Origin: Phyllobates terribilis
Taxonomy: Eukaryota
Reading direction: 5' to 3'
DNA: 64,000 bases
Assembly (NCBI RefSeq): GCF_046119375.1
Contig: NW_027362769.1
Span: forward strand, 373,364,001 to 373,428,000
Every line of letters begins with the position of its first letter. The stretch's first letter is position 1. The position numbers were made by a program, and so were the translations under genes. Positions 13,711 to 38,400 of this stretch are shown in pieces. The notes under the pieces were generated by a model that worked only from the letters and a program-made list of their open reading frames with translations, was not told the origin of the DNA and made no database searches.

Positions 13711-14703
13711 ATGTCGGACACGGAGGCGCCCACTACCACCAGCGCAGCTGCAGCAGCGGTGATGCCCTTTTCCCTGCCCTACATCTCTGGAGCGGCCTGG
13801 CTGCCCAAGTACTCAGGGGAGCCCCATGCCCTAACTGACTTCAAGGAAAGGCTGTACAGTTTGTTCCAAGTCTACCCCCTGACAGAGGAACAGAAGGTCA
13901 GCATATTAACAGGGCAGTTAACTGGCGCAGCCCAAAGGGAGGTAAAATCATGGCCCCCTGAGGAGAAAAGGACTGTGAGGGGTATTCTGGCCCGGCTGCG
14001 GGGTACCTTTGACACACGTACCTCCGCTGAAATTAAAATGAGGTTCTATGGATGTAAGCAGCGGGTACAGGACAGCATCAGAGACTATGCCCTAAATCTG
14101 CAGGAAGCCCTGAGGGCTATCCAACAAACTGACCCTGGCAGTGTGCAGGAAACGGATAAACTGCTAACAGAACAATTCATAGAAGGTCTGCTGTCCAGCG
14201 CCCACAGGGCCCAGCTGCGCCTCATGTTCTTTCAGAACCCCGACCTGACCTTTGCCCAATTTAAGGACAGGGCCATAAGGGTGCTCCGTGAATCTGCAAC
14301 CAGTGGCGCTATAAACCCCCGGCGCCCTGCTCTCACCTACCACCAGGAGGCGGCGCCCTCCTCTATGGACCCCGTGGGGGCTGATGCACAGGCCCTGAAC
14401 CAAGCCCCGTCGAAAGATCTGCACCGCCAAGTCCAGGAGCTGACCAGGAGTGTCGCGGCGTTGACCAGGACCGTCCAGGCGTTGCAAGTGGACCCGTCAA
14501 GACCCATCGAGCTGGCTTCAAGTCCGGAGGATGTCCCGTGGCGTCGACAGAGGAGGATCCCGTCGTTCCGAGGGAGGCCCACAGACCGCTACGCAGAGGA
14601 TGGACAGCCCATTTGCCGTCGATGCAACCAGCCCGGACACATTTCCAGGTACTGTAATTTAAACGGGTCCAACCTGGGGCAGAGGGCCAACCCCCAGGCA
14701 TAA
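13711..14703 (+). CDS. Gypsy gag (PNMA/Ma-like capsid with a CCHC zinc knuckle), 330 aa, intact
   Basis: CRRCNQPGHISRYC knuckle near the C-terminus; position directly after the PBS. Confidence 0.88.
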   Translation: MSDTEAPTTTSAAAAAVMPFSLPYISGAAWLPKYSGEPHALTDFKERLYSLFQVYPLTEEQKVSILTGQLTGAAQREVKSWPPEEKRTVRGILARLRGTFDTRTSAEIKMRFYGCKQRVQDSIRDYALNLQEALRAIQQTDPGSVQETDKLLTEQFIEGLLSSAHRAQLRLMFFQNPDLTFAQFKDRAIRVLRESATSGAINPRRPALTYHQEAAPSSMDPVGADAQALNQAPSKDLHRQVQELTRSVAALTRTVQALQVDPSRPIELASSPEDVPWRRQRRIPSFRGRPTDRYAEDGQPICRRCNQPGHISRYCNLNGSNLGQRANPQA

Positions 14704-14718
14704 GATCACCAGGCCCTT
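14658..14718 (+). promoter_or_regulatory. Predicted -1 ribosomal frameshift signal (slippery heptamer plus H-type pseudoknot)
   Basis: T TTA AAC in the gag frame at 14658-14664; 8-nt spacer; stem 1 14673-14679/14692-14698; stem 2 14683-14688/14712-14717. The -1 frame is open into the protease. Confidence 0.75.
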
Positions 14719-17700
14719 ACAATTGGCGTAAAAAGTACGTTGGGGGGCGCCCGGTTTTACCCATGGTGCTGGACGGTATCCCCATGAGCGCCTTGCTGGA
14801 TACAGGGTCACAAGTAACCACTATCCCTTATGTACTTTTTAAGCAGTATTGGACTGATGCTGATATCACACGGTATCCAGACAGTAACTTGAGCATCATC
14901 GCCAGTAATGGCTTACCCGTGCCGCAGATGGGGTTCAAGGAGATGACCATTAAAATTGGTAAAGTTGAACTGCTGGCACAGGGAGTGATTATTGTGGACA
15001 TTGACCGTCGTGAAAGTCACCCTAAAATAACTGTGGGTACTAACGTAATTGAAAATTGTCTTTCAGAGGTAATTGTAATCTTACAACAGGTGGCGGTGAA
15101 TGCTAGTTCCAGCCAACAGAGAGTCCTCAACAAGGAGTTAAAAGCCCTGATGAGACGGCAGCAGGTAGAACTGTCTGGTGGTGAGATCGGTAGCGTAAGA
15201 CTGAGTGACCCATTCCCCATTTCCATGCCTCCCAAAAGTGAAATGATGATCTGGTGTCGGACTGCAATCGGGTTGTGAGGTAGAGACTGCCAAGCCATGG
15301 TAGAACCCGTGTACTCGGACAGCAGGCCCACCATTTTGACAGCCCGGGGGGTGGTTGATGTCCGTCATGGGAGGGTGCCCGTCCGCATCCTCAACATTGG
15401 GGAGAGGGAAGTACACTTACCCAGGTACGCTACACTCGCCAAACTGTTTGTTGTCGAACACAAAGCTATCAGGGCCGTGGAACCCTTGCCTCCATCTCCA
15501 CAGGCGGAGGGTAATGGCTCCCAGAAACAAAAGGAGGACTGGTGCCAGAAACTCCATGTGGGTGCTGACTCCACTCCCCTGCACCAAAAACAAGGAGTCT
15601 ACCGGGTGGTACAGGAGTACGAGAGAGTCTTTAGTAAGCACCCGCTAGACTTCGGCCGAGTAAAGGGGATAGAACACCACATCCCCACAGGGAGCCACCC
15701 ACCGATAAAAGAAAGACACAGACCTGTACCCCCTGCACATTATCAGAATGCAAAGGGCATGCTAAGAGAGATGAAAGAAGCTGGGGTCATTAGAGACAGC
15801 TGTAGCCCCTGGGCAGCCCCCTTGGTTCTGGTGAAAAAGAAAGACGGCACCATGAGAATGTGCGTCGACTATAGACAAATCAACCGTATCACCCACAAAG
15901 ACGCATATCCGCTGCCTAGAATAGAGGAGTCTTTAGCCGCACTAAAATCTGCTAACTTCTTTTCTACTTTGGACCTTACTAGCGGGTACTGGCAGGTTCC
16001 TGTGGCAGAGGCTGACAAGGAGAAGACCGCCTTCACCACCCCGATGGGACTGAGTGAGTTCAACTGTATGCCCTTCGGGCTCTGCAACGCACCAGGGACC
16101 TTCCAGCGGCTGATGGAATGCTGTCTAGGGCACCGAAACTTCGAGACGGTTCTCCTTTACCTGGATGACGTGATCGTCTATTCGAAGACCTACGAGGACC
16201 ACCTAAAGCACCTGGCCGAGGTGTTCGAAGCCCTGGCAGGCTATGGCCTGAAGGTGAAACCATCGAAGTGTCACCTGCTGAAACCAAAGGTCCAGTACCT
16301 AGGGCACGTGGTAAGTGCAGAAGGAGTGGCCCCCGACCCTGACAAGGTCACGGCAATCAAGAGCTGGCCAAGCCCCTCGAACATCAAAGAGGTGAGACAG
16401 TTTCTCGGGTTGGTAGGCTACTACCGAAGGTTCATCCCAGGGTTCACTAAGATGGCAGCTCCTATGCAGGACCTCCTGATCGGACAATCTAAGTCCAGGA
16501 GTCAAAAGCCACCGTTCAAGTGGGATAAACCGGAAGAGGAGTCCTTCCGCCAGTTGAAGATGGCCCTCACGGGGGATGAGATCCTGGCCTACCCTGATTA
16601 TGGTCAGCCTTTTATTCTCCACACGGACGCCAGTAATGTGGGACTGGGAGCCGTACTGTCCCAAAACCAACAGGGCAGAGAAAGGGTGATCGCGTACGCC
16701 AGCCGGAAGCTGAGGCCCACCGAGAGGAACCCGGAGAATTACAGTTCCTTCAAGCTAGAATTCTTGGCAGTGGTGTGGGCCGTGACGGAACGCTTCAAGC
16801 ATTACCTGGCCTCCGCAAAGTTCACCGTGTACACGGACAACAACCCGTTGACACACCTGGACAATGCAAGACTGGGTGCCCTAGAACAGCGGTGGATGGC
16901 CCGTCTCTCCAACTATGACTTCGTGATCAAGTACCGGGCCGGCAAAACCAATGCCAACGCTGACGCCCTATCGAGGATGCCTCACTTACCTGAAGGTGAC
17001 GAAGACCCAGAAGAGCTGGAGGAGGTAGAACTCCCCGCGTTTCACCGGTATGGAGCCGCTCAATACTCCCACCGTGTGAAGGAGGAGGATCTAACAACCG
17101 TGATGATCAATCCCCTACCTCACCACAGCTGGGCCGAGACCCAAGATAGTGACCCTGCCATCCGTCTGGTGAAAGAACTGCTGACCCAGAAAGACGCCCG
17201 CATGAATCCGGATGCTCCAGAGGAAGCTAGACAGCTATGGAAGGAGAAGAGCAAGCTGTTCCTCTACGAAGGCAAGTTGTGCAGAAGGATTGTCAACCAC
17301 CGGACTCACGAGCTGACCTGGCAAGTCGTGGTCCCAAGGCGGGATGCAGCTATGGTCCTGGGGGCTTACCATGACAGAGCGGGACACTTCGGTTGGAAGA
17401 AACTGGAGTTCCTGCTAAGAGGAAGGTTCTTTTGGGTCGGCATGAGAGGAGCTGTAGAAAAGTGGTGCAGAGACTGTGGCCCTTGTCACCTGAGGAGGAA
17501 GGACCGCACCAGCCAGAAGACACCCTTGAGGCCCATCGTCACCACGCAGCCTCTTGAGCTGGTAGCTCTGGACCACGTCAAATTGGCTCCAAGCCGGTCT
17601 GGATACATCTATGCCCTGACAATCGTGGACCACTATTCCCGTTTTCTAGTGGTGGTCCCGGTAAAGGACTTGATAGCCCAAACAGCGGCTAGAACCTTCC

Positions 17701-18827
17701 AGCAATATTTCTGCCGTCCACACGGGTATCCGGAACAGGTCCTGACAGACCAGGGTCCAGCGTTCGAGGCTGAAATCTTCCAGGAGTTCTGCAACCTCTA
17801 TGGCTGTAAGAAGATTCGGACAACGCCTTACCATCCACAAACCAATGGGATGTGTGAGAAGATGAACAATATAGTCATTGATCTCCTGAAGACGTTGCCC
17901 CTGGAGGAACGCAGCCTGTGGCCAGAAAAACTGCCGGACCTGATAGACCTATACAACAATATCCCGGTGAATGCTACAAACTGCACCCCGGCTTACCTGA
18001 TGTGAGCTAGACCAGGTAAGCTGCCCGTAGACCTGGAGATGGGAGTCTTAATACCTGAGGACACCTCCCCGGATGCGGACTGGGATACGGAAAGGCAACT
18101 GCAGTACAAGAAGGAACAGGAGAGTGCGGAGAAGAGCCTGGCCCAGGTGAGAGAGATGCAAGAAAAACTCTTCAATCAACACGCCCCTGCTGGTCCCCTA
18201 GAACCTGGTGAGCAAGTCCTAAAGCGAAAAAGAAGGCTACATAAGTTGGACGACCAGTGGGAAAGGGAACCCTACACCGTACTGCAGTCTGACCACGACA
18301 ACCCAAAGGTGTGCGTAATCACCAAGGACGGAGGAGAAACCACTAGCGTCGTCTCCAGGGACCACCTCAAAAGATGCCCCGAGCAACTCCGTAGTGCAGA
18401 AGAGGATCAGAGTGACCTTGAACCCGCAGAGGACAAGGAAGAAATGATCAGCACCGTTCTCGGAGAGTTCCCTCAGTCCTGGACTCGCATAAATGATGCC
18501 ATAGTGGTACCTGTCCTGCATTTCCTGCAACCGGCACAGCAACAACCAACACCAGAGCCGGAAGGTGAAGAAGAGCAAGCGGTTCCAGAGGCAGAAGAGC
18601 CTGTACCAGCAGCCCAGGAGAGTCAACCCTCTGCTGACAGTGAGCCTGCCATGCCTGCGGTAAGCCAAAGAACCCTCAGACAGCTGCCTGCCCTACCTGT
18701 ACACCCAGCTGGTAGCTGCACTCCTAACGCTAGTGGGGAAAGCCAGGTTGGTCCACCACCAGACAGTGGGTTAAGGAGGTCAACCAGAAGCACAAAGGGG
18801 CAGATACCCGCTCGCTGGAGAATATAG
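14658..18827 (+). pseudogene. Gypsy pol (protease, RT, RNase H, integrase) in one frame, broken by two TGA stops
   Basis: LDTGS protease; YLDD RT; TDAS RNase H; HHCC-like HDRAGH...CRDCGPC; integrase D (ALDH), D (TDQG), E (CEKMN). The three track ORFs share one frame, with stops at 15276-15278 and 18003-18005. Confidence 0.92.
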
Positions 18828-21224: not shown

Positions 21225-21288
21225 CTAGGAGCTGCTCGCCGTGCCGGCAGGTTCTTATGCAGCATCTGTGACCTACAGAGCATCAGTC

Positions 21289-24200
21289 ATGGCCGCTTAT
21301 ATGAGACCCTCGTCCACACCGGGTCTCCCCCGCATCTCAGCCCTGACCGTGCTCCTTGAAGCCCGGCACATGGTTCGTGTTATCTGTCCGCTTTCCTAAT
21401 ATTGTCCAGCCACTTTTGGTTGTAGAGAATTAGAAAAACATGTCTGCTTTATTCCAGAAAAACAGCGCCACACCTGTCCATGGTTGTGTCTAGTACTGCA
21501 AGTCAGACTCATTCACTTCAGTAGAGCTCAGCTCTAATACCAGACTCAGCCCACGGACAGGTGTGGCGCTGTTTTTTTTGTTGTTTCAAGAAATCAGTCA
21601 TTTTTTTGTAATCGTGTATGTTATGGGTTCCCCTGGTGAGGTTGGTTTGCTAATCCATTTCACCAGGAGAGTAATTGACTAGAGCGAGGTACAGCGGATT
21701 GGGATGAACCAGATGGCTCTGGAACAGCAGAGCTGGATATGCAGGTCGCTATGGGAACAGCAGTGCTGGATATGCAGGTCGCTATGGTAACAGCAGTGCT
21801 GGATATGCAGGTCGCCATGGGAACAGCAGTGCTGGATATGCAGGTCGCTATGGGAACAGCAGTGCTGGATATGCAGGTCGCTATGGGAACAGCAGTGCTG
21901 GATATGCAGGTCGCTATGGGAACAGCAGTGCTGGATATGCAGGTCGCCATGGGAACAGCAGTGCTGGATATGCAGATCTGCACTGGAGTGGTGTGGAACA
22001 GCAGAACTGGATATGTTAATCAGCACTGGAGTGACGTGAAACAACCGAGCTGGATACATGTAGGTGAGCACCTGGACCAGCAGATTTGGATATGCAGGTT
22101 GGCACTGGAGCAGTGTGGAACACCGGAGCTGGTATGTAGGTCAGTACTTGGACCAGCATGGAACAGCAGATTTGGATATGCAGATCGGCACTGGAGAAGC
22201 GTTGAACAGCACAGCTGAATATGCGAGTCAGCACCTGGAATAGTGGAGCTGGATATGCGGGTCGGCACCTGGAGCAGCATGATACAGCAGAGCTGGATAT
22301 GCAGGTGGACACTTGGAGCGGCTTGGAACAGTGAAGTTGGATATGCAGGTTGAAACGATGGAACAGCAGAACAGAGTGTGCAGAGAGGCATCTTGGAACA
22401 GCAGAGTCGAGTAAGAGGACAATAAACACGAAGACATCTGTCCAGTGTTGAAACGCAAAGCTCTTTTTCATTTAATAAATTCTTATAACGATATTAATGC
22501 CTGTCCGTCTTACTCAGCAGCGCTTATATTACCCCATTATTTATTAGAATTTTTTAACTATTTATCTGAGTAAGAGCACAGGCACCTTGGAACAGCAGAG
22601 TCGAGTGTACAGTATAGCTGAGATGAGTATGTCAGAAGACACACTTTAGAATAAATGTACCAGAGTCCAGTACTGGGTACGCAGAGTTCAGGTATTTAGT
22701 AGCTAGCCTGGGCACTGAACCACGTGAATACTCTGCCTGGGCCAGCCTAGGCCTAGGGGAACGAAATCAGAGGTGCACACTGGGTTGTCAAAGTATCCAT
22801 TTTATTCATCTAATCTTTGTGCCATCATTTCTGCAGAAGTCAATAACTCATAGGCTGATCTACGTAGCGAGGATGACTCCAGAGCAAGCGCATCGCAGGG
22901 ATATACCAGGTAACTGTGCAAAAGTACAAACTTTGAAAACTTTTTTCTTACATAATTGCATGTACTTTGAGCTACAAATTTTTTTTTGGAAATGGGTTTC
23001 CTTAAAAATTGTGCACCGTTTTGCTTTTACAGGCTCTTTCTTTCCCTGCACATTCAACTTTGAAGCACTTTCAGAGGTGTGCCGAAAAAAAGATAGATAA
23101 GAGATCCAAACCCTCTTGTAAGATCAGAACTCACTGATGTATTCTCAGTGAACTCATTCTGCAGCCAGGGAAACAAAAAGTCTGTAAAAGCCAAACGGTG
23201 CAATTTTTTTTAAAGGGAATCTGACAGGTGATTCATGTTGAAGGAACTGCAGCAATCATGACAAACCTGTGACTCGCGGGAAGCGGGGGATGGAGGGGAA
23301 GCCATCTGAGCAAGGTGGTCCTAAATTGCCTTTTTAATGTTTCTTTTTTTCTGAAACAATGCAGGATTTCAGAGTAAAACATACGTGGCTGAAATGCTAA
23401 GCCGCATTCTGATTCAGTCGTCAGTTTCCCTTTAATTCAAAAACTTATTTTTATCCCCAAATTTATTCATTAAAAAAAAAATTCCCCTGTGGGGGTCCAT
23501 ATTTAAAGGGGTTTTCCAGGGCATTCCTTTATTTATTTATTTTTTTAAAGCAGATCTATCACCAGATTTTACAATATCAACTGCACACATTAATAAATAG
23601 ATCTTAGACCTAAGGAGGCCGGTGTACTTACTTTTAAAATCCATGCCTTTATACAGTAGCACAAGATTTCTTGTATAAAAAAAAACATAATAATGATTTA
23701 TTTTTCTCTGCACACAGATCATTACGAAAGATTATTTAATCGACTGATAAAATCCAACCTTGGAGAATCCATCTCCGGATTACTGCTGCTCTACCCCAGC
23801 TGTGTCATTCATATGATCGAGGTTAGTGCTATGAAATGGGAATGTGGACTGGGAATTAAAGGGGTGTTCCAGGAATGTAATATCTTTTTTTAATAAGTCA
23901 TTGATATCTGGAGGGTGGGGTCCTCCCCAAGTGAATGGGAAAAATTGCAGTACCGTTCCTAACCACTATACGTTGAACTTTTGTGACAGTTTTTGGTATA
24001 AACTAAGTCCTAAAAAGTCGCAAACTGCACAAAATCTTCTAAAAAGTTGCAAATTGCTAATTATTTTTACAGCATTCTTGCCAAAAGTTGAAAAAGTAGG
24101 CAAAAAATACAAGGAGGGGGTATGTCCAAAAAACTTTTTAGGCAGACTTATTAAGCCTTAAGCCAGAAAATGTCACACATTTTCCACCTGCATCTATGCC

Positions 24201-26539
24201 TTTTAACCCCTTTTGTGGCGTGATTTTTCTTTTTTGCACTTTTGTTTTTTCCCTCCCCTTCTTACAAGAGCCATGCCTTTTCATTTTATTCTTCTATCAT
24301 CATATCTTATATAAAAAAAAATGGTTTATGTCACCGTTTCCTGAGACCCGTAACTTTTAATTTTCAGTCGATGGAGCTGTGTAACGGCTTGTTTTTTTTT
24401 ACATGACAAACTGTAGATTTTATTGGTACCATTTTTGTGTACATACGGACAATACCAAATATGACAATTTCTATCTCATTATTTTTCATCTGAAAAAAAG
24501 AGGGATTGACTCAAGCTTTTGGATTTTTTTTGTAATATTTCTTAAAACATTTTTACTTTATTTTCCACTTCATAAATGGGCATTGTTGGATAGGGCTTGT
24601 TAAAACAACCAATTTTACAATTTACTGCTTCTTAAACTTTCCAGCCGTTCTTGAGATATTAACACTTTTCTTTTGTTTAGATCTTGTTTCCATGGAGACC
24701 GAGCACCACTGCTGGACAGCAGAACATGCGCAGTGCTTACAAGCTAGTTCAGCAGCGGTGGTCGGTCTCCTAGGCAACGAGCTGTAAACAAAAGTGTTAA
24801 TATCTCAAGAACGGCTGTAGATTTTAACAAGCAGTAAATTGCAAAAGTGCTTGATTTTACAAGCTCTATCTGACAATATCCATCTGTGAAGATGGGAATA
24901 ACCCCTTTAATTCTATAGTATTGCAGTATATAGTAGAAATGACAATCTCCTATGAAGTCCTACGTAACTGTTCTGTATGTTGTTAATGCATCCCTATTTA
25001 CTGCTTCCATAGGCTTCTTCCGAAATCCTTTCTGGGATAAATCAAGACCTCATCCAGATCCAGAATCAGGGTGCAAAGTACGTGATTATTATTTTTTGTT
25101 AGAACCAATACCGAAATAAGTGTTTTCTACCACTGCTGGAATAATTATGTAAAACCTCATGCAGCCTGCAGGTCTGATCCTCACAATTTACTGTGTCCGC
25201 ACACAACTCATCCATGTTTTTCTAGCTCACTTCTGCAGGACATCAAAATCCTTGTGATCTCCCACGACATCCGGAGCCGGCTGCTTCCGCAGTGGTATTT
25301 CCACATGGTGAGGCTGCCGTCACAGTACCTGGGTGACTTTGGGTCTGGACAGTCAGAGGAGACCGTGGTGGAAGAATGTCTCACTCTCATGTTGAAGTTA
25401 GGAGTCTTCTTGGCTCAGACTCTAAGTGTAAGTTCACACATAGCAGAAAAAAAACACAGTGGATTTTATCCGCTAGTAGAAAATTAGCTTTTTGCATTTT
25501 ACTGTCATTAGTTTCTGCAGCGTGATTGCAGTCACACACATGCTCCGGTGTTTCAGAGAAAAGTTTGAAAAGCTGACCGGGGACCACTCGGGCTGAAACC
25601 TGACCATTTAGATGTGGATCTCCAGCTGGCTTATCCCCCCCCCAGCACCGGGTGATTGACAGGTTTTTCCCTATATACACACACAAGGCCTGTCACGCAA
25701 TTGGCGTGGGGCTGGAAGAAGCTTTACAAACTGCTCATATATCAGCACAGCTTCTATCCTGCACTTATTTACTTTCCACCTTATCTGCAGCATTTTTTTC
25801 TGCTCTCCATAAGACTTTAGATACTTTCTCCCCTGTCCGCTGCACATCTGTGTGCACCTACCTTCCTGCTGCTACCTCTAGCACTGGGTGAAGGGAGGTG
25901 AGAGCAGATAGAGCCTGGAGCAGGAGTTCTGATCCACTCGTATCAGTTTTGCAAAAGCACTCAGCTAGATAAAGGATGTCACAATCTGCAGCAGCAAAAC
26001 GGTAGAAAATCTTTAATGAAGACTATTTAGAAAGTTTCTTAACTTTGCACTTAACAAATGAACAACAAAGGTTAAGATGTATAGGACAGTGATTATAGGA
26101 CGTAATATATTGGAAGCCGAAGTTCTGGACCTGTGGTAAAGCTTTTATTATAACCGAATGTATTTCTACAGCCTGGCAGCAAAGGTCCGGGAGGAAATCT
26201 GCATGACTTAGTGCCAGACCTGATGGTCAGAGAGGAGAACATCGACTTTCTTATTCGCTCCGAGAGGTTTCTCACACCAGAAGAGTTCCTCAAAATGTAT
26301 AACAAGCCAGTCAACAGTTCTGTTGCTTCAGGTAAACCTGTAGAGAGCGCGGCATGGGGTCACCTCTCCTGCCAATAGGATAGGACGACGCATGCTGATA
26401 ACAAATGTAACCTAGCGGGTATCAGTGACGTCACCAACACCCGGTCACTTTTTTATGCGGAACTGATCACAGATCACATTTATATCCTTGTTTCCTTACA
26501 GATCTTCTATGGCCCGCTCCTCAGCATCTGTATGTATAG
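21289..26539 (+). CDS. TEX47: TEX47 (C7orf62)-like protein, 7 coding exons, 241 aa, BLUF-like N-terminal domain
   Basis: Exons 21289-21372, 22837-22909, 23718-23821, 25013-25077, 25226-25427, 26172-26331, 26502-26539. All are GT-AG with compatible phases, 726 nt in total, no internal stops. Protein blocks match recalled human TEX47: HRLIYVAR; HYERLF...LGESISGLLLLYPSCVIHMIEASSE; KILVISHDIRSRLLPQW; GSKGPGGNLHDLVPDL; FLKMYNKP; LLWPAP. AATAAA at 26613-26618. Exon 1 is the least certain (weaker donor GTTCGT). Confidence 0.87.
21720..21975. repeat. 33-bp minisatellite in TEX47-like intron 1, with a degenerate tail to ~22400
   Basis: Unit GAACAGCAGTGCTGGATATGCAGGTCGCTATGG, about 8 copies. Confidence 0.9.
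24596..24910. mobile_element. Small palindromic MITE remnant with a CCCCTTTAA end
   Basis: CAGCCGTTCTTGAGATATTAACACTTTT (~24642) is inverted against AAAAGTGTTAATATCTCAAGAACGGCTG (~24791); ends ACCCCTTTAA. Confidence 0.55.
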
Positions 26540-26618: not shown

Positions 26619-27149
26619 CAAAATACAAGAATTAAACTATTGTGGTGACTCTTTATTGTTCAGTAACACGAAGACATTACTCCTAGGCTGCGTTATCCAA
26701 TGTGCACGTACTGCCGGCTTCACCCCCGGCATTGCAGTGAAGTCCATGGTGGATAAGCAGCATGAACTCACATTGGCGCTGCTCAGTGGCAGAGATTCTC
26801 ACCCACAATGCAGGTCTGTATCTTCCAGACTGACAGTCGGCAGCGCATCCATCCTGTACGAATACAGACTGAGAGGGTAGTCTACTACAGCAGTCTTCAG
26901 GGCCAGATGTATCCAGCTGGATTTGCAGGAAGTGAATCACAAAAAATGTGGTTGCCGGTAAATAATAATCTTTTTATTTATATAGCGCCAACATATTCCG
27001 CAGCGCTTTACAATTCAGACAATTTATCAGCACTGTCCCCATTGGGGCTCACAATCTAGGTAAATCAAAGCAAATTGGATTGGTGCGGAACTAATCAGCT
27101 CATCCCCACTGACGCCCCCTCGTCTCCACCGCTATCCCCATAGACGGTC

Positions 27150-27690
27150 TCTAGTCTCAACCGACGTCCGCTCGTCCCCGTCGATGTTCCCTCCTCCCCA
27201 CCGACGTCCACTTCTCCCCATCGATGTTCCCCCGTCCCCACCGACGTCCGCTTGTCCCCATCAATGTTCCCTCGTCTCCGCCGACGTCCGCTCGTCCCCA
27301 TCGATGTTCCCCTGTCCCCACCGACGCCCTCTCATCTCCATTAATGTTCCCTCGTCCCCATCGATGTTCACTCGTCCTCGTCCGCTTGTCCCCATCGATG
27401 TTCCCCCGTCCCCACCGACGTCCGCTTGTCCCCATCGATGTTCCCCCGTCCCCACCGACGTCCGCTTGTCCCCATCAATGTTCCCTCGTCTCCGCCGACG
27501 TCCGCTCATCCCCATCGATGTTCCCCCGTCCCCACCGACGTCCGCTTGTCCCCATCAATGTTCCCTCGTCTCCGCCGACGTCCGCTCATCCCCATCGATG
27601 TTCCCTCGTCCCCATCAACGTCCGCTCATCCCCATGTTACCTCATCTCCACCAACGTCCACTCATCCCCATCGATGTTCCCTTGTTCCCA
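27150..27690. repeat. CpG-rich ~40-bp minisatellite just upstream of PGP
   Basis: Unit CCCATCGATGTTCCCCCGTCCCCACCGACGTCCGCTTGTC (40-bp period between 27391 and 27431). Confidence 0.88.
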
Positions 27691-27887: not shown

Positions 27888-30800
27888 ATGGCGGCCTCCA
27901 AGTGCTCGCGGCTGAGCGGGGAGCTGTCCCGCCGGGTGCTGGCCTCGGTGGACACGCTGCTCTTTGACTGTGACGGGGTGCTGTGGCGGGGGGACGAGGC
28001 GGTGCCGGGGGCCCCGGAGCTGGTCACCGCCCTGCGGAGCAGCGGGAAGCGGGTCTTCTACCTGACGAACAACAGCACCAAGACCCGGGCCATGTACGCC
28101 GAGAAGCTGGGCCGGCTGGGCTTCGGAGCGGAGCCGGGGGAGGTGTTCGGCACCGCGTACTGCACGGCCCGGTACCTGCGGGACGAGGCGCGGCTGCAGG
28201 GGAAGGTCTATCTGATCGGCGGCACGGCGCTGAGCCGGGAGCTGGAGGCGGCGGGGATCCCGCATGTGGGCAGCGGCCCGGAGCCGGTCACCGGCGGGAT
28301 GAAGGACTGGGCGGCGCTGGAGAAGGACCCGGATGTGCGGGCGGTGGTGGTCGGCTTCGACGAGCACTTCAGCTACATGAAACTGACGCGAGCGCTCCAC
28401 TATCTGCAGGACCCGGAATGTCTGTTCATCGCCACCAACACCGACACCCGCCTGCCGCTGGAGGGAGGACGCGTCATCCCCGGTACTGACCTGACGGGAC
28501 TGAAGCAGACGCCGCTCGGCCTCCTATATAAAGACTGACATTGATTCCCATAACAATCAATCAGAGCGCAGCTCTCAATTGTACTGAGCACTGTAAAGAA
28601 TGAAAGCTGCGTTCTGATTGGCTGCAATGAGTAACTAAGACAGTTTTCTTTTGACGCTGAGCTCTGATAGGTTGCTATGGTTATCCAGGGAAGCTTTCTG
28701 TTATTTATATTTGCCCAGCGGTGCTGGCACCGCCCCCCATTCTGTATGGAGGACTATGTGGGGCCCATTATTCTGTATGAAGGACTATGTGGGGCCCATT
28801 ATACTGTATGGAGGACTATGTGGGGCCATTATTCTGTATGGAGGACTATGTGGGGCCCATTATACTGTATGGAGGACTATGTGGGGTCATTATTCTGTAT
28901 GGAGGACTATGTGGGGTCATTATACTGTATGGAGGACTATGTGGGGGCCATTACACTGTATGAAGGACTATGTGGGGCCCATTATACTGTATGGAGGACT
29001 ATGTGGGGCCCATTATACTGTATGGAGGACTATGTGGGGCCCATTATACTGTATGGAGGACTATGTGGGGCCCATTATACTGTATGGAGGACTATGTGGG
29101 GCCCATTATACTGTATGGAGGACTATGTGGTGCCATTATTCTGTATGGAGGACTATGTGGGGTCATTATTCTGTATGGAGGACTATGTGGGGCCCATTAT
29201 ACTATATGGAGGACTATGTGGGGCCCATTATACTGTATGGAGGACTATGTGGGGCCCATTATACTGTATGGAGGACTATGTGGGGCCCATTATACTGTAT
29301 GGAGGACTATGTGGGGTCATTATTCTGTATGGAGGACTATGTGGGGTCATTATACTATATGGAGGACTATGTGGGGCCCATTATACTGTATGGAGGACTA
29401 TGTGGGGCCCATTATACTGTATGGAGGACTATGTGGGGTCATTATACTGTATGGAGGACTATGTGGGGTCATTATACTGTATGGAGGACTACGTGGGGTC
29501 ATTATACTGTATGGAGGACTATGTGGGGTCATTATACTGTATGGAGGACTATGTGGGGTCATTATACTGTATGGAGGACTATGTGGGGTCATTATACTGT
29601 ATGGAGGACTATGTGGGGTCATTATACTGTATGGAGGACTATGTGGGGCTATTATTCTGTATGGAGGACTATGTGGGGTCATTATTCTGTATGGAGGAGG
29701 ACTATGTGGGGTCATTATACTGTATGGAGGAGGACTATGTGGGGTCATTATACTGTATGGAGGAGGACTATGTGGGGTCATTATACTGTATGGAGGAGGA
29801 CTATGTGGGGTCATTATACTGTATGGAGGAGGACTATGTGGGGTCATTATACTGTATGGAGGAGGACTATGTGGGGTCATTATACTGTATGGAGGAGGAC
29901 TATGTGGGGTCATTATACTGTATGGAGGAGTATGTGTGGGGCCCCCCCCATACTGTATGGAGGAGTATGTGTGGGGCCCCCCCCCATACTGTATGGAGGA
30001 GTATGTGTGGGGCCCCCCCCCCATACTGTATGGAGGAGTATGTGTGGGGCCCCCCCCCATACTGTATGGAGGAGTATGTGTGGGGCCCCCCCCCCCATAC
30101 TGTATGGAGGAGTATGTGTGGGCCCCCCCCCCCATACTGTATGGAGGAGTATGTGTGGGCCCCCCCCCCATACTGTATGGAGGAGTATGTGTGGGGCCCC
30201 CCCCCATACTGTATGGAGGAGTATGTGTGGGGCCCCCCCCCATACTGTATGGAGGAGTATGTGTGGGGCCCCCCCCCATACTGTATGGAGGAGTATGTGT
30301 GGGGCCCCCCCCCCATACTGTATGGAGGAGTATGTGTGGGGCCCCCCCCCATACTGTATGGAGGAGTATGTGTGGGCCCCCCCCCCATACTGTATGGAGG
30401 AGTATGTGTGGGGCCCCCCCCATACTGTATGGAGGAGTATGTGTGGGGCCCCCCCCCATACTGTATGGAGGAGTATGTGTGGGGCCCCCCCCCATACTGT
30501 ATGGAGGAGTATGTGTGGGGCCCCCCCCCATACTGTATGGAGGAGTATGTGTGGGGCCCCCCCCATACTGTATGGAGGAGTATGTGTGGGGCCCCCCCCC
30601 ATACTGTATGGAGGAGTATGTGTGGGGCCCCCCCCCATACTGTATGGAGGAGTATGTGTGGGGCCCCCCCCATACTGTATGGAGGAGTATGTGTGGGGGC
30701 CCCCCCCATACTGTATGGAGGAGTATGTGTGGGGCCCCCCCCCATACTGTATGGAGGAGTATGTGTGGGGCCCCCCCCCATACTGTATGGAGGAGTATGT

Positions 30801-33800
30801 GTGGGGCCCCCTCCCATACTGTATGGAGGAGTATGTGTGGGGCCCCCCCCCATACTGTATGGAGGAGTATGTGTGGGGCCCCCCCCATACTGTATGGAGG
30901 AGTATGTGTGGGGCCCCCCCCCCCCATACTGTATGGAGGAGTATGTGTGGGGCCCCCCCCCCCATACTGTATGGAGGAGTATGTGTGGGGCCCCCCCCCC
31001 CCATACTGTATGGAGGAGTATGTGTGGGGCCCCCCCCCCCATACTGTATGGAGGAGTATGTGTGGGGCCCCCCCCCCCATACTGTATGGAGGAGTATGTG
31101 TGGGGCCCCCCCCCCCCATACTGTATGGAGGAGTATGTGTGGGGCCCCCCCCCATACTGTATGGAGGAGTATGTGTGGGGCCCCCCCCCCATACTGTATG
31201 GAGGAGTATGTGTGGGGCCCCCCCCCATACTGTATGGAGGAGTATGTGTGGGCCCCCCCCCCCATACTGTATGGAGGAGTATGTGTGGGCCCCCCCCCCC
31301 ATACTGTATGGAGGAGTATGTGTGGGGGCCCCCCCCCCATACTGTATGGAGGAGTATGTGTGGGGGCCCCCCCCCCATACTGTATGGAGGAGTATGTGTG
31401 GGGCCCCCCCCCCATACTGTATGGAGGAGTATGTGTGGGGCCCCCCCCCCATACTGTATGGAGGAGTATGTGTGGGGCCCCCCCCCCCATACTGTATGGA
31501 GGAGTATGTGTGGGGCCCCCCCCCATACTGTATGGAGGAGTATGTGTGGGCCCCCCCCCATACTGTATGGAGGAGTATGTGGGGCCATTATGCTGTATGG
31601 AGGAGTATGTGGGGCCCCCCATACTGTATGGAGGAGTATGTGGGGGCCCATTATGCTGTATGGAGGAGTATGTGGGGCCCCCCATGCTGTATGGAGGAGT
31701 ATGTGGGGCCCCCCATGCTGTATGGAGGAGTATGTGGGGGGCCCCCCATGCTGTATGGAGGAGTATGTGGGGGCCCCCGTTATACTGTATGGAGGAGTAT
31801 GTGGGGGCCCCCGTTATACTGTATGGAGGAGTATGTGGGGCCCCCGTTATACTGTATGGAGGAGTATGTGGGGGCCCCGTTATACTGTATGGAGGAGTAT
31901 GGAGGGCTGTTAATACATCTCAAGGTTGACCCGTGACTTTTATTTTGTCCATCTCTGTAGTTGACATCCCTGCATTAGATGTACTGAATGATTGTGACAG
32001 CGGAGGAAGTGGCTCCATCCCGTCAGGCGCTGTCGTGTCCCCGATGCTCGGCTCGTTGCTGCATATCTTACATAAGACTGGTGATGGGTGACGCAATCAA
32101 ACACATCAACTCTTGTATGCGTCCGGTTATTGCAGAACCTAATTACTCTGTTCACACTTGCACTAATGTGACAGATGGCATCAGCCGATAACGGCCAAGA
32201 TCTGGAAAGAAACTTGCTGACGGCTTCACCCATGGAGCTGCTGATGCCAGCACTAGGCGGGTGTAATCTACAGCCTTATCTGTCAGCAGTGCTATTTTTG
32301 GACCTTAAAGGGGTTTTCCACTACTATTTTATTTTAATATATAAATCTTGCCCAGGTTGGTGTAGAAAGTGGGTTTTTTTGGGGGGTTTTTTTTTTACAC
32401 CATACTGGGCCAGATCTTCATGTAAATATTAGTCAAGGACAATCCCTTTAAGCTGGCCACACACTAGAGATATTTTACAAGGCCGATTTAGACAAAGTCC
32501 ATTCATCCGTCAGCGCCTTTTCTTGGCTCAAGATGGAGCTGATGGCAGATATGTTAGATTTTTTCCGCTTGTGATCTGGTGATCTAGTTTATTTATAGGG
32601 ATTGGTGTCAAACTACAGATCTACATTCCATCACCCGAAGACCGGGCTGCAATAGAGACTGAGCCATCGTTTTGTCCAGATTGACCATTCGCTTGTGGCA
32701 TTGTCGTCCACAAGATGGCGACCTTCACAGCACGAGATTTTCAGAAATCTGCTGTCTCAGGTCCCTAATGTGCGTCCAGCATTATCTTGGCTTCCAGCAG
32801 GGTTGTCATTAGATTTCACAATGCAAATGAAATACATTACTCTGAGGCTGGTGTACTTGCTGGAATAATCCATGTCAGCATAACTGTATGATCCTTTATA
32901 AAAGTTAACAGTTCAGTGTCCCTCCTCCCTGCTACTGAATCTGTACCAACATTGCCTGATTGACAGCCCATAAGTGCCCTCATCCCTGCTGCATCATCTC
33001 CACCCACCTAGTGTGATTGACAGCTCAAGTGCCACCCACATATCCTGATTGAAAGATCCTCAGAGCCCCTCCTCCTTACAGCTGCAGAATCTCCATCCAC
33101 CTATCCTATTCTGATTTACAGCGCCTTAGTGCCCCTACTGCGGAATCCCCACCCACCTAGCATGATTTACAGCGCCTCCGTGCCCTTCCTCCCTGCTTCT
33201 GCATCTACCAACATTGCCTGATTGACAACCCCTCAGTGCCCCTCATCCCTGCTGCAGAATGTGCCACCCACCTAGCCTCATTGACAGCCCCTCAGTGCCC
33301 CTCGTCCCTGCTGCAATCTCCACCTACCTAGCGTGATTGACAGCTCCTCAGTGTCCCTCCTCCCTTGTACTGCAGAATCTCCACCCACCTTGCCTGATTT
33401 ACAGCACCTGAGTTCCCCTTCTCCCTACTGCAGAATCCCCACCCACATAGCGTGATTAACAGCTCAGTGCCTCTCCTCCCTGCTGCAGAATCTCCACCCA
33501 CCTTGCCTGATTGATAGTGCTTCAGTGCTCCTTTTCCATGCTGCAGAATCTCCACCTAGCCTGATTGACAGCTCCTCAGTGTCCCTCCTCCCCGCTGCAG
33601 AATCTTCACCCACCTAGCCTGATTGACAGCTCAGTGTCCCTCCTCCCCGCTGCAGAATCTCCATCCAACTAGCCTGATTGACAGCTCAGTGTCCCTCCTC
33701 CCTGCTGAGATCTCGCTGCAGCTGTCAGGCTGGCTGGGCGGAGACTGAATACATTGGACTCATTCTCTCTCACTTTTTAGCTGGACTCCTAAAATGAGCT

Positions 33801-35498: not shown

Positions 35499-38400
35499 AG
35501 AAGTGGGGCGGGTCTATGTCTACAGGAAGTGGGGGCGGGTCTATACAGGAAGTGGAAGCAGGTCTATAGCTACAGGAAGTGAGGGTGGGTCTATGTCTAC
35601 AGGAAGTGGAAGCAGGTCTATAGCTACAGGAAGTGGGGTGGGTCTATGTCTACAGAATGTGGGAGCAGGTCTATAGCTACAGGAAGTGGGGGCGGGTCTA
35701 TACAGGAAGTGGAAGCAGGTCTATAGCTACAGGAAGTGGGGGCAGGTCTATAGCTATAGGAAGAGTGGGCGGGTCTATTTCTACAGGAAGTGGGGGTGGG
35801 TCTAGTTCTACAGGAAGTGGGGGCTGATCTATATTTACAGGAAGTGGGGAGCTGGTCTATATCTGCATAAAGTGAGGACGGGTTTATATCTACAGGAAGT
35901 GGTAGCGAGTATATTTCTACAGGAAGTGTGGGTGGGTCTATATAGCTCTACAGGAAGTGTGGGCGGGTCTATACAGGAAGTGGGGGTGGGTCTATATATC
36001 TACAGGAAGTGGGGAGCTGGTCTATATATAAAGTGAGGACGGGTCTATATCTACAGGAAGTGTGGGTGGGTCTATATCTCTACAGGAAGTGTGGACAAGT
36101 CTATACAGGAAGTGGGGTGGGTCTGTATCTACAGGAAGTGGGAGCTGGTCTATAGCTACAGGAAGTGAGGGCGGGTCTATTTCTACAGGAAGTGGGGACG
36201 GGTTTATATATCTACAGGAAGTGGGGGTGGGTCTATACAGGAAGTGGGGGCAGGTCTATATCTACAGGAAGTGGGGGCGGGTCTATACCTCTACAGGAAG
36301 TGGGGGCGGGTCTATACTTCTACAGGAAGTGGGGGTGGGTCTATATTTACAGGAAGTGGGGTGGGTCTGTATCTACAGGAAGTGGGAGCTGGTCTATAGC
36401 TACAGAAAGTAAGGGCGGGTCTATTTATACAGGAAGTGGGGGCAGGTATATATATCTACAGGAAGTGGGGGCAGGTCTATAACTACAGGAAGAGGGGGGT
36501 GGGTCTATACAGGAAGTGGGAGCGGGTCTATAGCTACAGAAAGTGGGGATGGGTCTATATCTACAGGAAGTGTGGGTGGGTCTATATATCTACAGGAAGT
36601 TTGGGCGGGTCTATATGTCTACAGGAAGTGTGGGCAGGTCTATATCTACAGAAAGTGGGAGCGGGTCTCTACAGGAAGTGGAGGCTGGTCTATATCTCTA
36701 CGAGAAGTGGGGATGGGTTTATATCTACAGGAAGTGGGGGCGGGTCTCTATCTCTACAGGAAGTGGGGGCGGGTTTATATCTACAGGAAGTGTGGGCAGG
36801 TCTATTTCTACAGAAAGTGTGGGCGGGTCTATATATCTACTGGAAGTGTGGGCGGGTCTATATCTCTACAGGAAGTGTGGGCTAGTCTATGTATACAGGA
36901 AGAGGGGGTGGGTCTGTATCTACAGGAAGAGGGGTGGGTCTATATCTACAGGAAGTGGGAGCGGGTCTATAGCTACAGGAAGTGGGGGCGGGTCTTTCTA
37001 CAGAATGTGGGGGCGGTTCTATTTCTACAGGAAGTGTGGGCGCGTCTATATGTCTACAGGAAGTGGGGGCAGGTCTATTTCTACAGAAAGTGGGAGCGGG
37101 TATATACAGGAAGTGGAGGCGGGTCTATATTTCTACGAGAAGTGGGGATGGGTTTATATCTACAGGAAGTGGGGAGCAGGTCTATACAGAAAGTGGGGGC
37201 GGGTCACTAGCTCCACAGGAAGTGGGGGTGGGTTTATATTGACAGGAAGTGTGGGCGGTCTATATATCTACAGGAAGTGTGGGCGGGTCTATATCTCTAC
37301 AGCAAGTGTGGGCGAGTCTATATCTACAGGAAGTGGGGTGGGTCTGTATCTACAGGAAGTGGGGGCGGGTTTATATATCTACAGGAAGTGGGGACAGGTC
37401 GGTCTATACAGGAAGTGGGGGTGAGTCTATTTCTACAGAAAGTGTGGGCTGGTCTATATCTACAGGAAGTGGGGTGGGTCTATCTACAGGAAGTGGGAGC
37501 TGGTCTATAGCTACAGGAAGTGAGGGCGGGTCTATTTATACAGAAAGTGGGGGCGGGTTTATATGTCTACAGGAAGTGGGGCAGGTCTATAGCTACAGGA
37601 AGTGTGGGCAGGTCGGTCTATACAGGAAGTGGGGGTGAGTCTATTTCTACAGAAAGTGTGGGCGGATCTGTATATCAACAGGAAGTGTGGGTTGGTCTAT
37701 ATCTCTACAGGAAGTGGAGGCGGGTCTATACAGGAAGTGGGAGCTGGTCTATTTCTATAGGAAGTGGGGGCAGGTCTATATATCTACAGGAAGTGGGAGC
37801 GGGTCTATAGCTACAGGAAGTGAGGGCGGGTCTATTTCTGCAAGAAGTGTGGGCAGTTCTATTTCAACAGGAAGTGTGGGGGGGTCTATATGTCTACAGG
37901 AAGTGGGGGCAGGTCTATATCTACAGAAAGTGAGAGCGAGTCTATACAGGAAGTGGAGACGGGTCTATATGAGAAGTGGGGATGGGTTTATATCTACAGG
38001 AAGTGGGGAGCAGGTCTATATCTACAGAAAGTGGGGGAGGGTCTATACAGGAAAGTGGGGGCAGCTCTCTACAGGAAGTGGGGGTGGGTCTATATCTACA
38101 GGAAGTGGGAGCAGGTCTATATCTACAAGAAGTGTGGGCGGGTCTATACAGGAAGAGGGGGTGGGTCTATTTCTATAGGAAGTGTGGGTGGGTCTCTATA
38201 GGAAGTGAGGGCAGGTCTATAGCTACAAGAAGTAGGGAGCATATCTATATCTCTACATAAAGTGGGGATGGGTCTATATATACAAGAAGCGGGGGCGGGT
38301 CTATATATACAGGAAGTGTGGGCAGGTCTATATATCTACAGGATGTGTGGGCGGGTCTATATCTCTACAGGAAGTGGGGGTGGGTCTATATCTACAGAAA

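Follow-up and report, generated by a model that had tools for sequence, protein, structure and literature searches.

A seven-exon TEX47 orthologue in Phyllobates terribilis and the residues of its BLUF-like pocket

Gene structure and transcripts

The window analysed here is a stretch of 64,000 nucleotides from Phyllobates terribilis (assembly GCF_046119375.1, contig NW_027362769.1, positions 373,364,001 to 373,428,000), and all coordinates below are counted from its first letter. On the forward strand, positions 21289-26539 hold seven exons with GT-AG splice sites and compatible phases, giving a coding sequence of 726 nt, i.e. 241 amino acids and a stop (Table 1). This gene is the frog's orthologue of TEX47, the protein called DYBLUP in Ciona and MOT7 in Chlamydomonas. 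The uninterrupted 241-aa frame across seven exons that had been read from the letters was confirmed by its canonical splice sites and by the NCBI protein "testis-expressed protein 47-like [Phyllobates terribilis]", to which 241 of 241 residues (100%) are identical. The original prediction had called the gene hidden; this does not hold, since NCBI has already annotated it with exactly this 241-aa product, and the reading as an unannotated gene was dropped.

Table 1. Exons of the TEX47 gene in window coordinates, with the residues and elements that they encode
Feature	Position	Strand	Content
Exon 1	21289..21372	+	Start codon, residues 1-28; N-terminus disordered in the AF2 model
Exon 2	22837..22909	+	Residues 29-52 and one base; beta-1 strand with Tyr37 (position of the BLUF photoactive Tyr)
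Exon 3	23718..23821	+	Residues 53-87; alpha-1 (Asn66), beta-2 (Gly73), beta-3 (His84, Glu87)
Exon 4	25013..25077	+	Residues 88-108 and two bases; helix alpha-2
Exon 5	25226..25427	+	Residues 109-176; beta-4, beta-5 (Arg127, Trp132, Phe134), first C-terminal helix
Exon 6	26172..26331	+	Residues 177-229 and one base; C-terminal helical part of the TEX47 domain
Exon 7	26502..26539	+	Residues 230-241, TAG stop; conserved C-terminal W-P-x-P motif

The junctions were compared with RNA-labelled contigs from the same organism. Five of the six were bridged: exon 1-2 and exon 6-7 by contigs of run X2, exon 3-4 by a contig of run X4, exon 4-5 by a contig of run X5, and exon 5-6 by contigs of runs X1 and X3. 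The spliced RNA contigs at the locus come from seven runs of one study, with undisclosed tissue, and their depth is low (2-5x). The exon 2-3 junction was absent from these contigs, where depth was very low; the RefSeq product, being identical, supports it. The run X2 contig across exon 1-2 begins at 21253, hence the 5'UTR extends at least to there. Frog and turtle TEX47 are both split into several exons, with introns at shared positions, whereas in the pig the coding sequence has no introns and is nested in an intron of a ZNF804-family gene.

Family membership and fold

The Pfam profile PF24787 (TEX47) matched the frog protein with 215.7 bits (E 5.8e-64; gathering cut-off 25 bits), aligning residues 33-221 with profile positions 3-192 of 192. 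A sequence search of the PDB returned bovine sperm TEX47 (9fqr_H0, E 2.5e-47, residues 11-237) and, over nearly the full length, the Chlamydomonas "inner-arm dynein f/I1 light chain" (8glv_D9, MOT7; E 1.2e-15). These three matches bear out the TEX47-like identity that had been suggested. Foldseek with the AF2 model placed 9fqr_H0 first (E 1.3e-16, target TM 0.92) and 8glv_D9 second (E 2.2e-14), followed by the Leishmania chain 9y6s_7M and then by BLUF structures. When exon 5 alone was searched against the PDB, the genuine match was again 9fqr_H0; the top matches, dTor designed helical-repeat proteins, were rejected as spurious, since they came from 3-bit matches to a single helix, repeated many times over.

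The frog protein carries all the family invariants, which among 135 members are found as follows: Arg34 in 132, Gly73 in 135, Tyr78 in 129, His84 in 134, Glu87 in 135, Arg127 in 128 and Trp132 in 131. Its identity to the orthologues of over 25 species of frog is 57-86%. Mammalian TEX47/C7orf62 (9fqr H0) belongs to the same full-length PF24787 family and has Gly73, Tyr78, His84, Glu87, Arg127 and Trp132 in common with the frog protein, but it has Leu for Tyr37 and His for Asn66. DYBLUP, MOT7 and LAX28 share with the frog the BLUF fold and the helical C-terminal architecture, and MOT7 (8glv D9) further shares Tyr37, His84 and Trp132, with Ser at the position of Asn66.

In the AF2 model (pTM 0.75) the N-terminal half has the BLUF topology beta-alpha-beta-beta-alpha-beta-beta, a mixed sheet of five strands plus two helices, with strands at residues 32-41, 72-77, 81-88, 112-124 and 132-136 and helices at 50-65 and 90-105. 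Foldseek matched it to more than 40 BLUF chains (Tll0078, PixD, AppA, BlrP1, bPAC and others) with E from 8e-7 to 1e-4 and probability 1.00, and the TEX47 family profile found the BLUF domain of bPAC at E 9e-4 with the Tyr, Asn and Gln/His in register. The predicted BLUF fold of this half is thus borne out by topology, structural search and family profile. Pfam gave a different result: the BLUF profile PF04940, which was to have been part of the check, did not match the frog protein even at E 10. Among 20 relatives five matched it below threshold (best E 0.0011, at most 17.8 bits against 25). As PF04940 is silent on the frog protein, the BLUF homology rests on profile, fold and literature and not on Pfam. 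A homologue search seeded with E. coli BluF recovered almost only enterobacterial BluF fragments and made a poor BLUF profile; the hhalign match between the TEX47 alignment and this shallow enterobacterial BluF alignment (E 0.0033, probability 9.7, a local match of 41 columns) served for the residue register only.

The BLUF-like fold of the TEX47 family is already known, having been published in 2019-2021, and the domain is therefore not new as such. DYBLUP in Ciona and MOT7 in Chlamydomonas have been described as a subunit with a BLUF fold, part of the tether/tetherhead complex and a regulator of inner-arm dynein f/I1 (PMC7909887), and the fold has also been described for LAX28/TEX47 (bioRxiv 10.1101/782888). 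The original prediction had remarked that databases might already record it, and UniProt indeed names orthologues "BLUF domain-containing protein".

Pocket residues compared with BLUF photoreceptors and across the family

The residue numbers given earlier for Y37, N66, G73, H84, E87 and W132 are exact in the spliced product, and the alignment with AppA was reproduced by way of the BluF register: Y37 corresponds to Y21, N66 to N45, H84 to Q63 and W132 to W104. Tyr37 aligned with the photoactive Tyr of bPAC in the motif R-L-V/I-Y-V. Asn66 aligned with BluF N31, which equals AppA N45 at an ungapped offset of +14, and with the latter of the two Asn residues in the bPAC motif K-N-N; His84 aligned with Gln49 of bPAC and Q49 of BluF. 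The Trp of beta-5 (AppA W104) is kept as Trp132, and the position of the Met (AppA M106) is Phe134 in the frog and Phe or Tyr in 106 of the 135 family members. The D-x-R-H stretch that follows alpha-2 in BLUF domains has no counterpart in the family-profile alignment.

The bacterial and euglenid BLUF photoreceptors (AppA, PixD/Slr1694, Tll0078, BlrB, BlrP1, bPAC and OaPAC; PF04940) match the frog protein in fold and topology, and are in register with it at the Tyr of beta-1, the Asn of alpha-1, the T/S-G motif, the L/I-E motif and the Trp of beta-5. The frog protein differs from them in having His for Gln and Phe for Met, in the unaligned D-x-R-H, in a PF04940 score below threshold, and in an extra helical C-terminal half of about 100 residues that is specific to TEX47. 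The exchanges of Gln and of Met make a canonical BLUF photocycle unlikely in frog TEX47. Canonical photoswitching had been doubted from the Gln-to-His exchange already; that view stands, with the Met position being Phe as well. The invariance of His84, Trp132 and Tyr78, which line the pocket, speaks for its being more than a relic of the fold.

Comparison of the orthologues at the Tyr, Asn, Gln, Trp and Met positions, another of the proposed checks, covered the 135 family members. His occupies the position of the BLUF Gln in 134 of these, hence His84 is invariant family-wide and not a deviation of the frog. Mammals have Leu at the Tyr37 position and His at that of Asn66 (bovine 9fqr_H0 and the pig, warthog and opossum-like sequences), just as the original prediction had stated for the human protein. 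This Tyr is ancestral and has been lost several times: mammals, birds, reptiles, teleosts and sharks no longer have it. Asn66 is limited to neobatrachian frogs, oysters and one annelid, and is in the frogs a neobatrachian substitution of an ancestral His or Tyr. The statement that the frog protein keeps both the Tyr and the Asn of the flavin pocket is therefore right for Tyr37 and wrong for Asn66, which was derived within frogs. Elsewhere among amphibians, and in most vertebrates, the residue is His or Tyr, and the reading of Asn66 as a leftover of a BLUF ancestor was rejected. Tyr37 and Asn66 are two flavin-contacting residues of true BLUF domains, and neobatrachians are nearly the only sampled animals with both: the pair occurs in 24 of the 135 sequences, 23 of them from neobatrachian frogs.

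A reading from sequence alone had recovered the correct seven-exon model and the remote-homology alignment. What is added here is the residue map over 135 orthologues, with its invariant His, its ancestral and repeatedly lost Tyr and its neobatrachian Asn. This map bears on whether animal DYBLUP binds a flavin-like ligand, and points to natural variants for comparison (frog Tyr/Asn against mammal Leu/His). From Ciona, a species of ~684 Da has been reported.

Proposed function and alternative readings

The axonemal location, the partners and the function of frog TEX47 are proposed by orthology. MOT7 lies centrally in the T/TH stellate (PMC10266980), and TEX47 has been reported as a sperm-specific T/TH subunit that touches the f-beta linker (PMC11779644). 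A place in this complex next to CFAP43/CFAP44, in contact with inner-arm dynein f, is known from bovine sperm, Chlamydomonas and Ciona (PMC11779644, PMC10266980, PMC7909887). By orthology, the frog protein of 241 aa would be the small subunit at the centre of the axonemal tether/tetherhead complex (CFAP43/CFAP44). In bovine sperm this subunit contacts inner-arm dynein f/I1 at the linker of its f-beta heavy chain; a frog protein that does likewise would help to regulate the flagellar waveform. Residues ~30-137 are modelled to adopt the BLUF fold, followed by the helical C-terminal half. The BLUF-like pocket is a family-specific variant with the photocycle Gln as an invariant His, the Met as Phe or Tyr, and an invariant Trp, which makes an adaptor role likelier than a canonical blue-light switch. 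The domain may bind a ligand, and is most likely a structural or regulatory adaptor.

We consider it very probable that the whole explanation is an ordinary TEX47 orthologue, in which the BLUF-like domain most likely acts as such an adaptor and not as a canonical switch. That the frame arose by chance, belongs to a pseudogene or was spliced wrongly in the prediction would agree with the very low RNA depth (2-5x) and the one unseen junction, but is hardly credible against an uninterrupted frame over seven canonical GT-AG exons, five junctions in RNA, intron positions common to the turtle, and the identity of 57-86% to orthologues from over 25 species of frog, every family invariant being intact. 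A canonical BLUF blue-light photoreceptor, working by proton-coupled electron transfer between Tyr, Gln and flavin, would account for the BLUF fold with its Tyr, Asn and Trp in place, and the Chlamydomonas mot7 mutant is reported to have a blue-light phenotype (PMC7909887). Within the family, light dependence has been reported for this algal member only. With the photocycle Gln as His in 134 of 135 members including the frog, the Met as Phe and PF04940 below threshold, we find such a photoreceptor highly improbable.

A flavin-binding or redox-sensing module without the canonical photocycle, tuning dynein f/I1 in sperm flagella or motile cilia, is a reading that we hold to be unlikely; neobatrachians would then be better flavin binders than mammals by virtue of Tyr37 and Asn66. 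It draws on the alignment of Tyr37, Asn66 and Trp132 with their counterparts in the flavin pockets of bPAC, BluF and AppA, on the near confinement of the Tyr and Asn pair to neobatrachians, and on the family-wide invariance of the pocket residues His84, Trp132 and Tyr78. Further, FAD was detected by HPLC in the f/I1 fraction of Ciona, and MOT7 is a weak binder of FAD/FMN whose phenotype is redox-dependent (PMC7909887). On the other hand, the same study finds flavins "unlikely to be an intrinsic ligand" (PMC7909887), Asn66 is derived from His or Tyr, the light-responsive MOT7 has Ser there, the essential Gln and the Met are replaced by His and Phe, D-x-R-H is unaligned, and the Pfam BLUF profile is silent on the frog. 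More speculatively still, the neobatrachian His-to-Asn change may have improved a candidate binding of flavin or a derivative, giving frog sperm a dynein regulator that can bind a ligand and responds to redox state or light; we think this improbable. If true, the frog would be the best animal DYBLUP in which to find the family's ligand.

The TEX47 gene and its transcripts

The seven predicted exons splice into a coding sequence of 726 nt, i.e. 241 codons and a TAG stop. Upstream of every internal exon there is a polypyrimidine tract ending in AG, a GT follows each of these exons, and the phases are compatible. The spliced product was identical (100%, 241/241 residues) to the NCBI protein 'testis-expressed protein 47-like [Phyllobates terribilis]' (P0072); the residue numbers originally given (Y37, N66, G73, H84, E87 and W132) are exact. 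The gene is not hidden, as had been claimed, since the NCBI annotation already carries exactly this product, and the frog TEX47 locus is an ordinary, annotated gene. A search with exon 5 among 1.84 billion representatives gave 67 relatives, the matches of a follow-up search included named anuran proteins, and more than 25 frog species have annotated TEX47 orthologues (57-86% identity).

RNA-labelled contigs of the same organism (seven runs from one study, depth only 2-5x) span exon junctions 1-2, 3-4, 4-5, 5-6 and 6-7, all at the predicted GT..AG, and junction 2-3 was absent from these contigs; five of the six junctions are thus seen in RNA. Set beside the unbroken frame and the bridged junctions, a non-gene at this locus is extremely improbable.

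Coordinates of TEX47 exons and neighbouring elements in the window
Feature	Position	Strand	Remarks
PNMA/gag-like ORF	13711-14703	+	Ty3/gypsy-type element
pol ORF	15297-18005	+	Ty3/gypsy-type element; 902 aa, unbroken; RT, RNase H, integrase zinc-finger and integrase core domains
Ty3/gypsy-type retroelement	13711-18827	+	upstream of TEX47
TEX47 exon 1	21289-21372	+	
MITE-like inverted repeat	21458-21576		intron 1
Minisatellite	21721-22350		intron 1
TEX47 exon 2	22837-22909	+	
TEX47 exon 3	23718-23821	+	
MITE-like inverted repeat	24568-24891		intron 4
TEX47 exon 4	25013-25077	+	
TEX47 exon 5	25226-25427	+	
TEX47 exon 6	26172-26331	+	
TEX47 exon 7	26502-26539	+	
Satellite arrays	27135-27500, 28742-31901, 33032-33714, 35500-40769		downstream of TEX47

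In pig, TEX47 is encoded by a single unbroken, intronless block of 762 nt (pig locus L002:3001-3762), which lies within a ZNF804-family gene of opposite orientation, whereas the frog (21289-26539) and turtle genes are multi-exon; the spliced turtle gene covers 7.7 kb (turtle locus L004:3001-10678), and its introns agree in position with those of the frog over exons 3 to 6. Given the single block in pig and the introns shared by frog and turtle, mammalian TEX47 appears to have arisen by retrocopying from the multi-exon gene still present in these two.

The BLUF-like N-terminal half

P0072 scored 215.7 bits on Pfam PF24787 (TEX47; cut-off 25) and gave no match to PF04940 (BLUF). PF04940 matched 5 of 20 relatives, all sub-threshold (best E 0.0011), and precomputed matches are present on some oyster and sea-anemone orthologues; UniRef names several orthologues 'BLUF domain-containing protein' (the frogs Engystomops and Pyxicephalus, Latimeria, salmonids and molluscs). 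By sequence, P0072 matched bovine sperm TEX47 (9fqr_H0, E 2.5e-47) and Chlamydomonas MOT7 (8glv_D9, 'inner-arm dynein f/I1 light chain', E 1.2e-15) over almost the full length, and a profile of 20 family members extended to the true BLUF domains of bPAC (E 9e-4 to 6e-3), OaPAC (0.04) and BlrP1 (0.4).

The AlphaFold2 model built on these 20 aligned members (pLDDT 76, pTM 0.75) contains beta(32-41), alpha(50-65), beta(72-77), beta(81-88), alpha(90-105), beta(112-124) and beta(132-136), then helices at 153-219; in this model the element order of the N-terminal half is that of the BLUF topology. Foldseek against the PDB ranked 9fqr_H0 highest (E 1.3e-16, target TM 0.92), followed by 8glv_D9, the Leishmania axonemal chain 9y6s_7M and more than 40 BLUF chains (E 8e-7 to 1e-4, probability 1.00), among them Tll0078, TePixD, AppA, Slr1694, BlrP1, bPAC, OaPAC, BlsA and BlrB. 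Model, structural matches and profile thus agree on the predicted BLUF-like half, which is established knowledge: BLUF folds for LAX28/TEX47/MOT7 were predicted with Phyre2 in 2019 (bioRxiv 10.1101/782888), and with the publications up to 2025 discussed below the central claim was already known.

The residue register was taken from the profile-to-bPAC alignment. Here Tyr37 corresponds to the photoactive Tyr (R-L-V-Y-V), Asn66 to the second Asn of K-N-N, Gly73 to the T-G motif, Glu87 to the conserved BLUF Glu and Trp132 to the beta-5 Trp; in contrast, His84 stands in place of the photocycle Gln (F-F-Q-I-L-E) and Phe134 in place of the beta-5 Met. The D-x-R-H stretch that follows alpha-2 in BLUF has no frog counterpart in this alignment. 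An independent hhalign comparison with an alignment based on E. coli BluF paired N66 with BluF N31, H84 with Q49 and E87 with E52. The BluF profile fell on AppA (2iyg_A) as 5-94 on 19-108, a gapless offset of +14, hence BluF Y7, N31, Q49, E52 and M92 equal AppA Y21, N45, Q63, E66 and M106. The AppA alignment of the original prediction was correct.

Pocket residues across lineages and possible function

We aligned 75 named orthologues and then all 135 family members covering the domain. His84, as predicted for the frog, occurs in 134 of the 135 and also in Chlamydomonas MOT7; judged from these alignments, Gln-to-His is a family-defining change and no frog peculiarity. Near-invariant are Trp132 (131/131), Gly73 and Glu87 (135/135 each), Arg34 (132/135), Tyr78 (129/135) and Arg127 (128/135). 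At position 134, 106/135 members carry Phe or Tyr; a single named orthologue (1/75, the bird Indicator) has Met.

Tyr37 is present in 70/135 members, including MOT7, lamprey, amphioxus, echinoderms, several molluscs, Actinia, Latimeria, Amia and all amphibian sequences with an intact N-terminus; mammals have Leu instead, birds and teleosts Val, turtles and geckos Phe, and cartilaginous fish Leu, Phe or Val. By this distribution frogs keep an ancestral Tyr lost in several lineages. The Asn was said to be kept as well, but was gained. Asn66 (33/135) is confined among vertebrates to neobatrachian frogs; of the non-neobatrachian frogs, Ascaphus has Tyr, Discoglossus, Bombina and Spea His, and Rhinophrynus Arg, while caecilians, axolotl and two ranoid frogs (Rana temporaria and Pyxicephalus) have His and most other vertebrates His or Tyr. 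Its codon in the window, AAC, is one base from CAC. By this pattern the Asn is a derived residue, substituted at the origin of Neobatrachia, and no flavin-pocket residue carried over from an ancestor. The Tyr37-Asn66 pair occurs in 24 of the 135 sequences, 23 of them neobatrachian. The sole non-frog is P0147, a JGI metagenome-derived protein that carries a precomputed PF04940 match. Only this lineage map, with the Asn gained and the His universal, is new here.

The frog protein is very probably the orthologous tether/tetherhead subunit regulating inner-arm dynein f, its BLUF-fold domain being incapable of the canonical Tyr-Gln-flavin photocycle. The Ciona orthologue was purified together with f/I1 dynein and named DYBLUP for its BLUF domain, human C7orf62 and mouse Tex47 being noted as its homologues (Kutomi et al. 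2021, PMC7909887). MOT7 was placed in the centre of the FAP43/FAP44 stellate, and no TEX47 equivalent was seen in human respiratory cilia (Walton et al. 2023, PMC10266980); TEX47 was modelled as a sperm-specific tether/tetherhead subunit contacting the f-beta linker (Leung et al. 2025, PMC11779644; PDB 9fqr). By orthology, frog TEX47 would sit in this complex and act on inner-arm dynein f.

Canonical photoreception, for which the matching Tyr and Asn might speak, is highly improbable with His84 in place of the Gln. A true module for flavin binding or redox sensing, perhaps improved in frogs by Tyr plus Asn, with the invariant His/Trp/Tyr pocket as putative ligand site, is an unlikely though less remote reading. 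Kutomi et al. 2021 wrote that flavins 'are unlikely to be an intrinsic ligand' and proposed a 684-Da flavin-derived species and a redox role (PMC7909887); flavin or redox sensing in flagella, as originally proposed, restates this published hypothesis. Overall, the observation was confirmed, and its interpretation is partly supported and already known.

Repeats around the gene

The minisatellite of intron 1 (33-bp unit, 7.7 copies, 97% matches) grades into degenerate 43-44-bp units and produces spurious ORFs on both strands. The MITE-like inverted repeats of introns 4 and 1 have arms of 106 nt (84% complementarity) and 26 nt (96%). RNA-contig depth is very high over both; at the intron-4 element the summed word depth reaches ~1,800 while the adjoining intron is silent, which points to a high-copy element that many transcripts carry. 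The upstream Ty3/gypsy-type element may be a young copy, as its pol ORF is unbroken. Downstream satellites include 30- and 36-bp units (95% matches, 3.2 kb) and a 27-bp unit of ~194 copies (5.3 kb) with strong GC skew, and from these arrays arise kilobase-long false ORFs in several frames.
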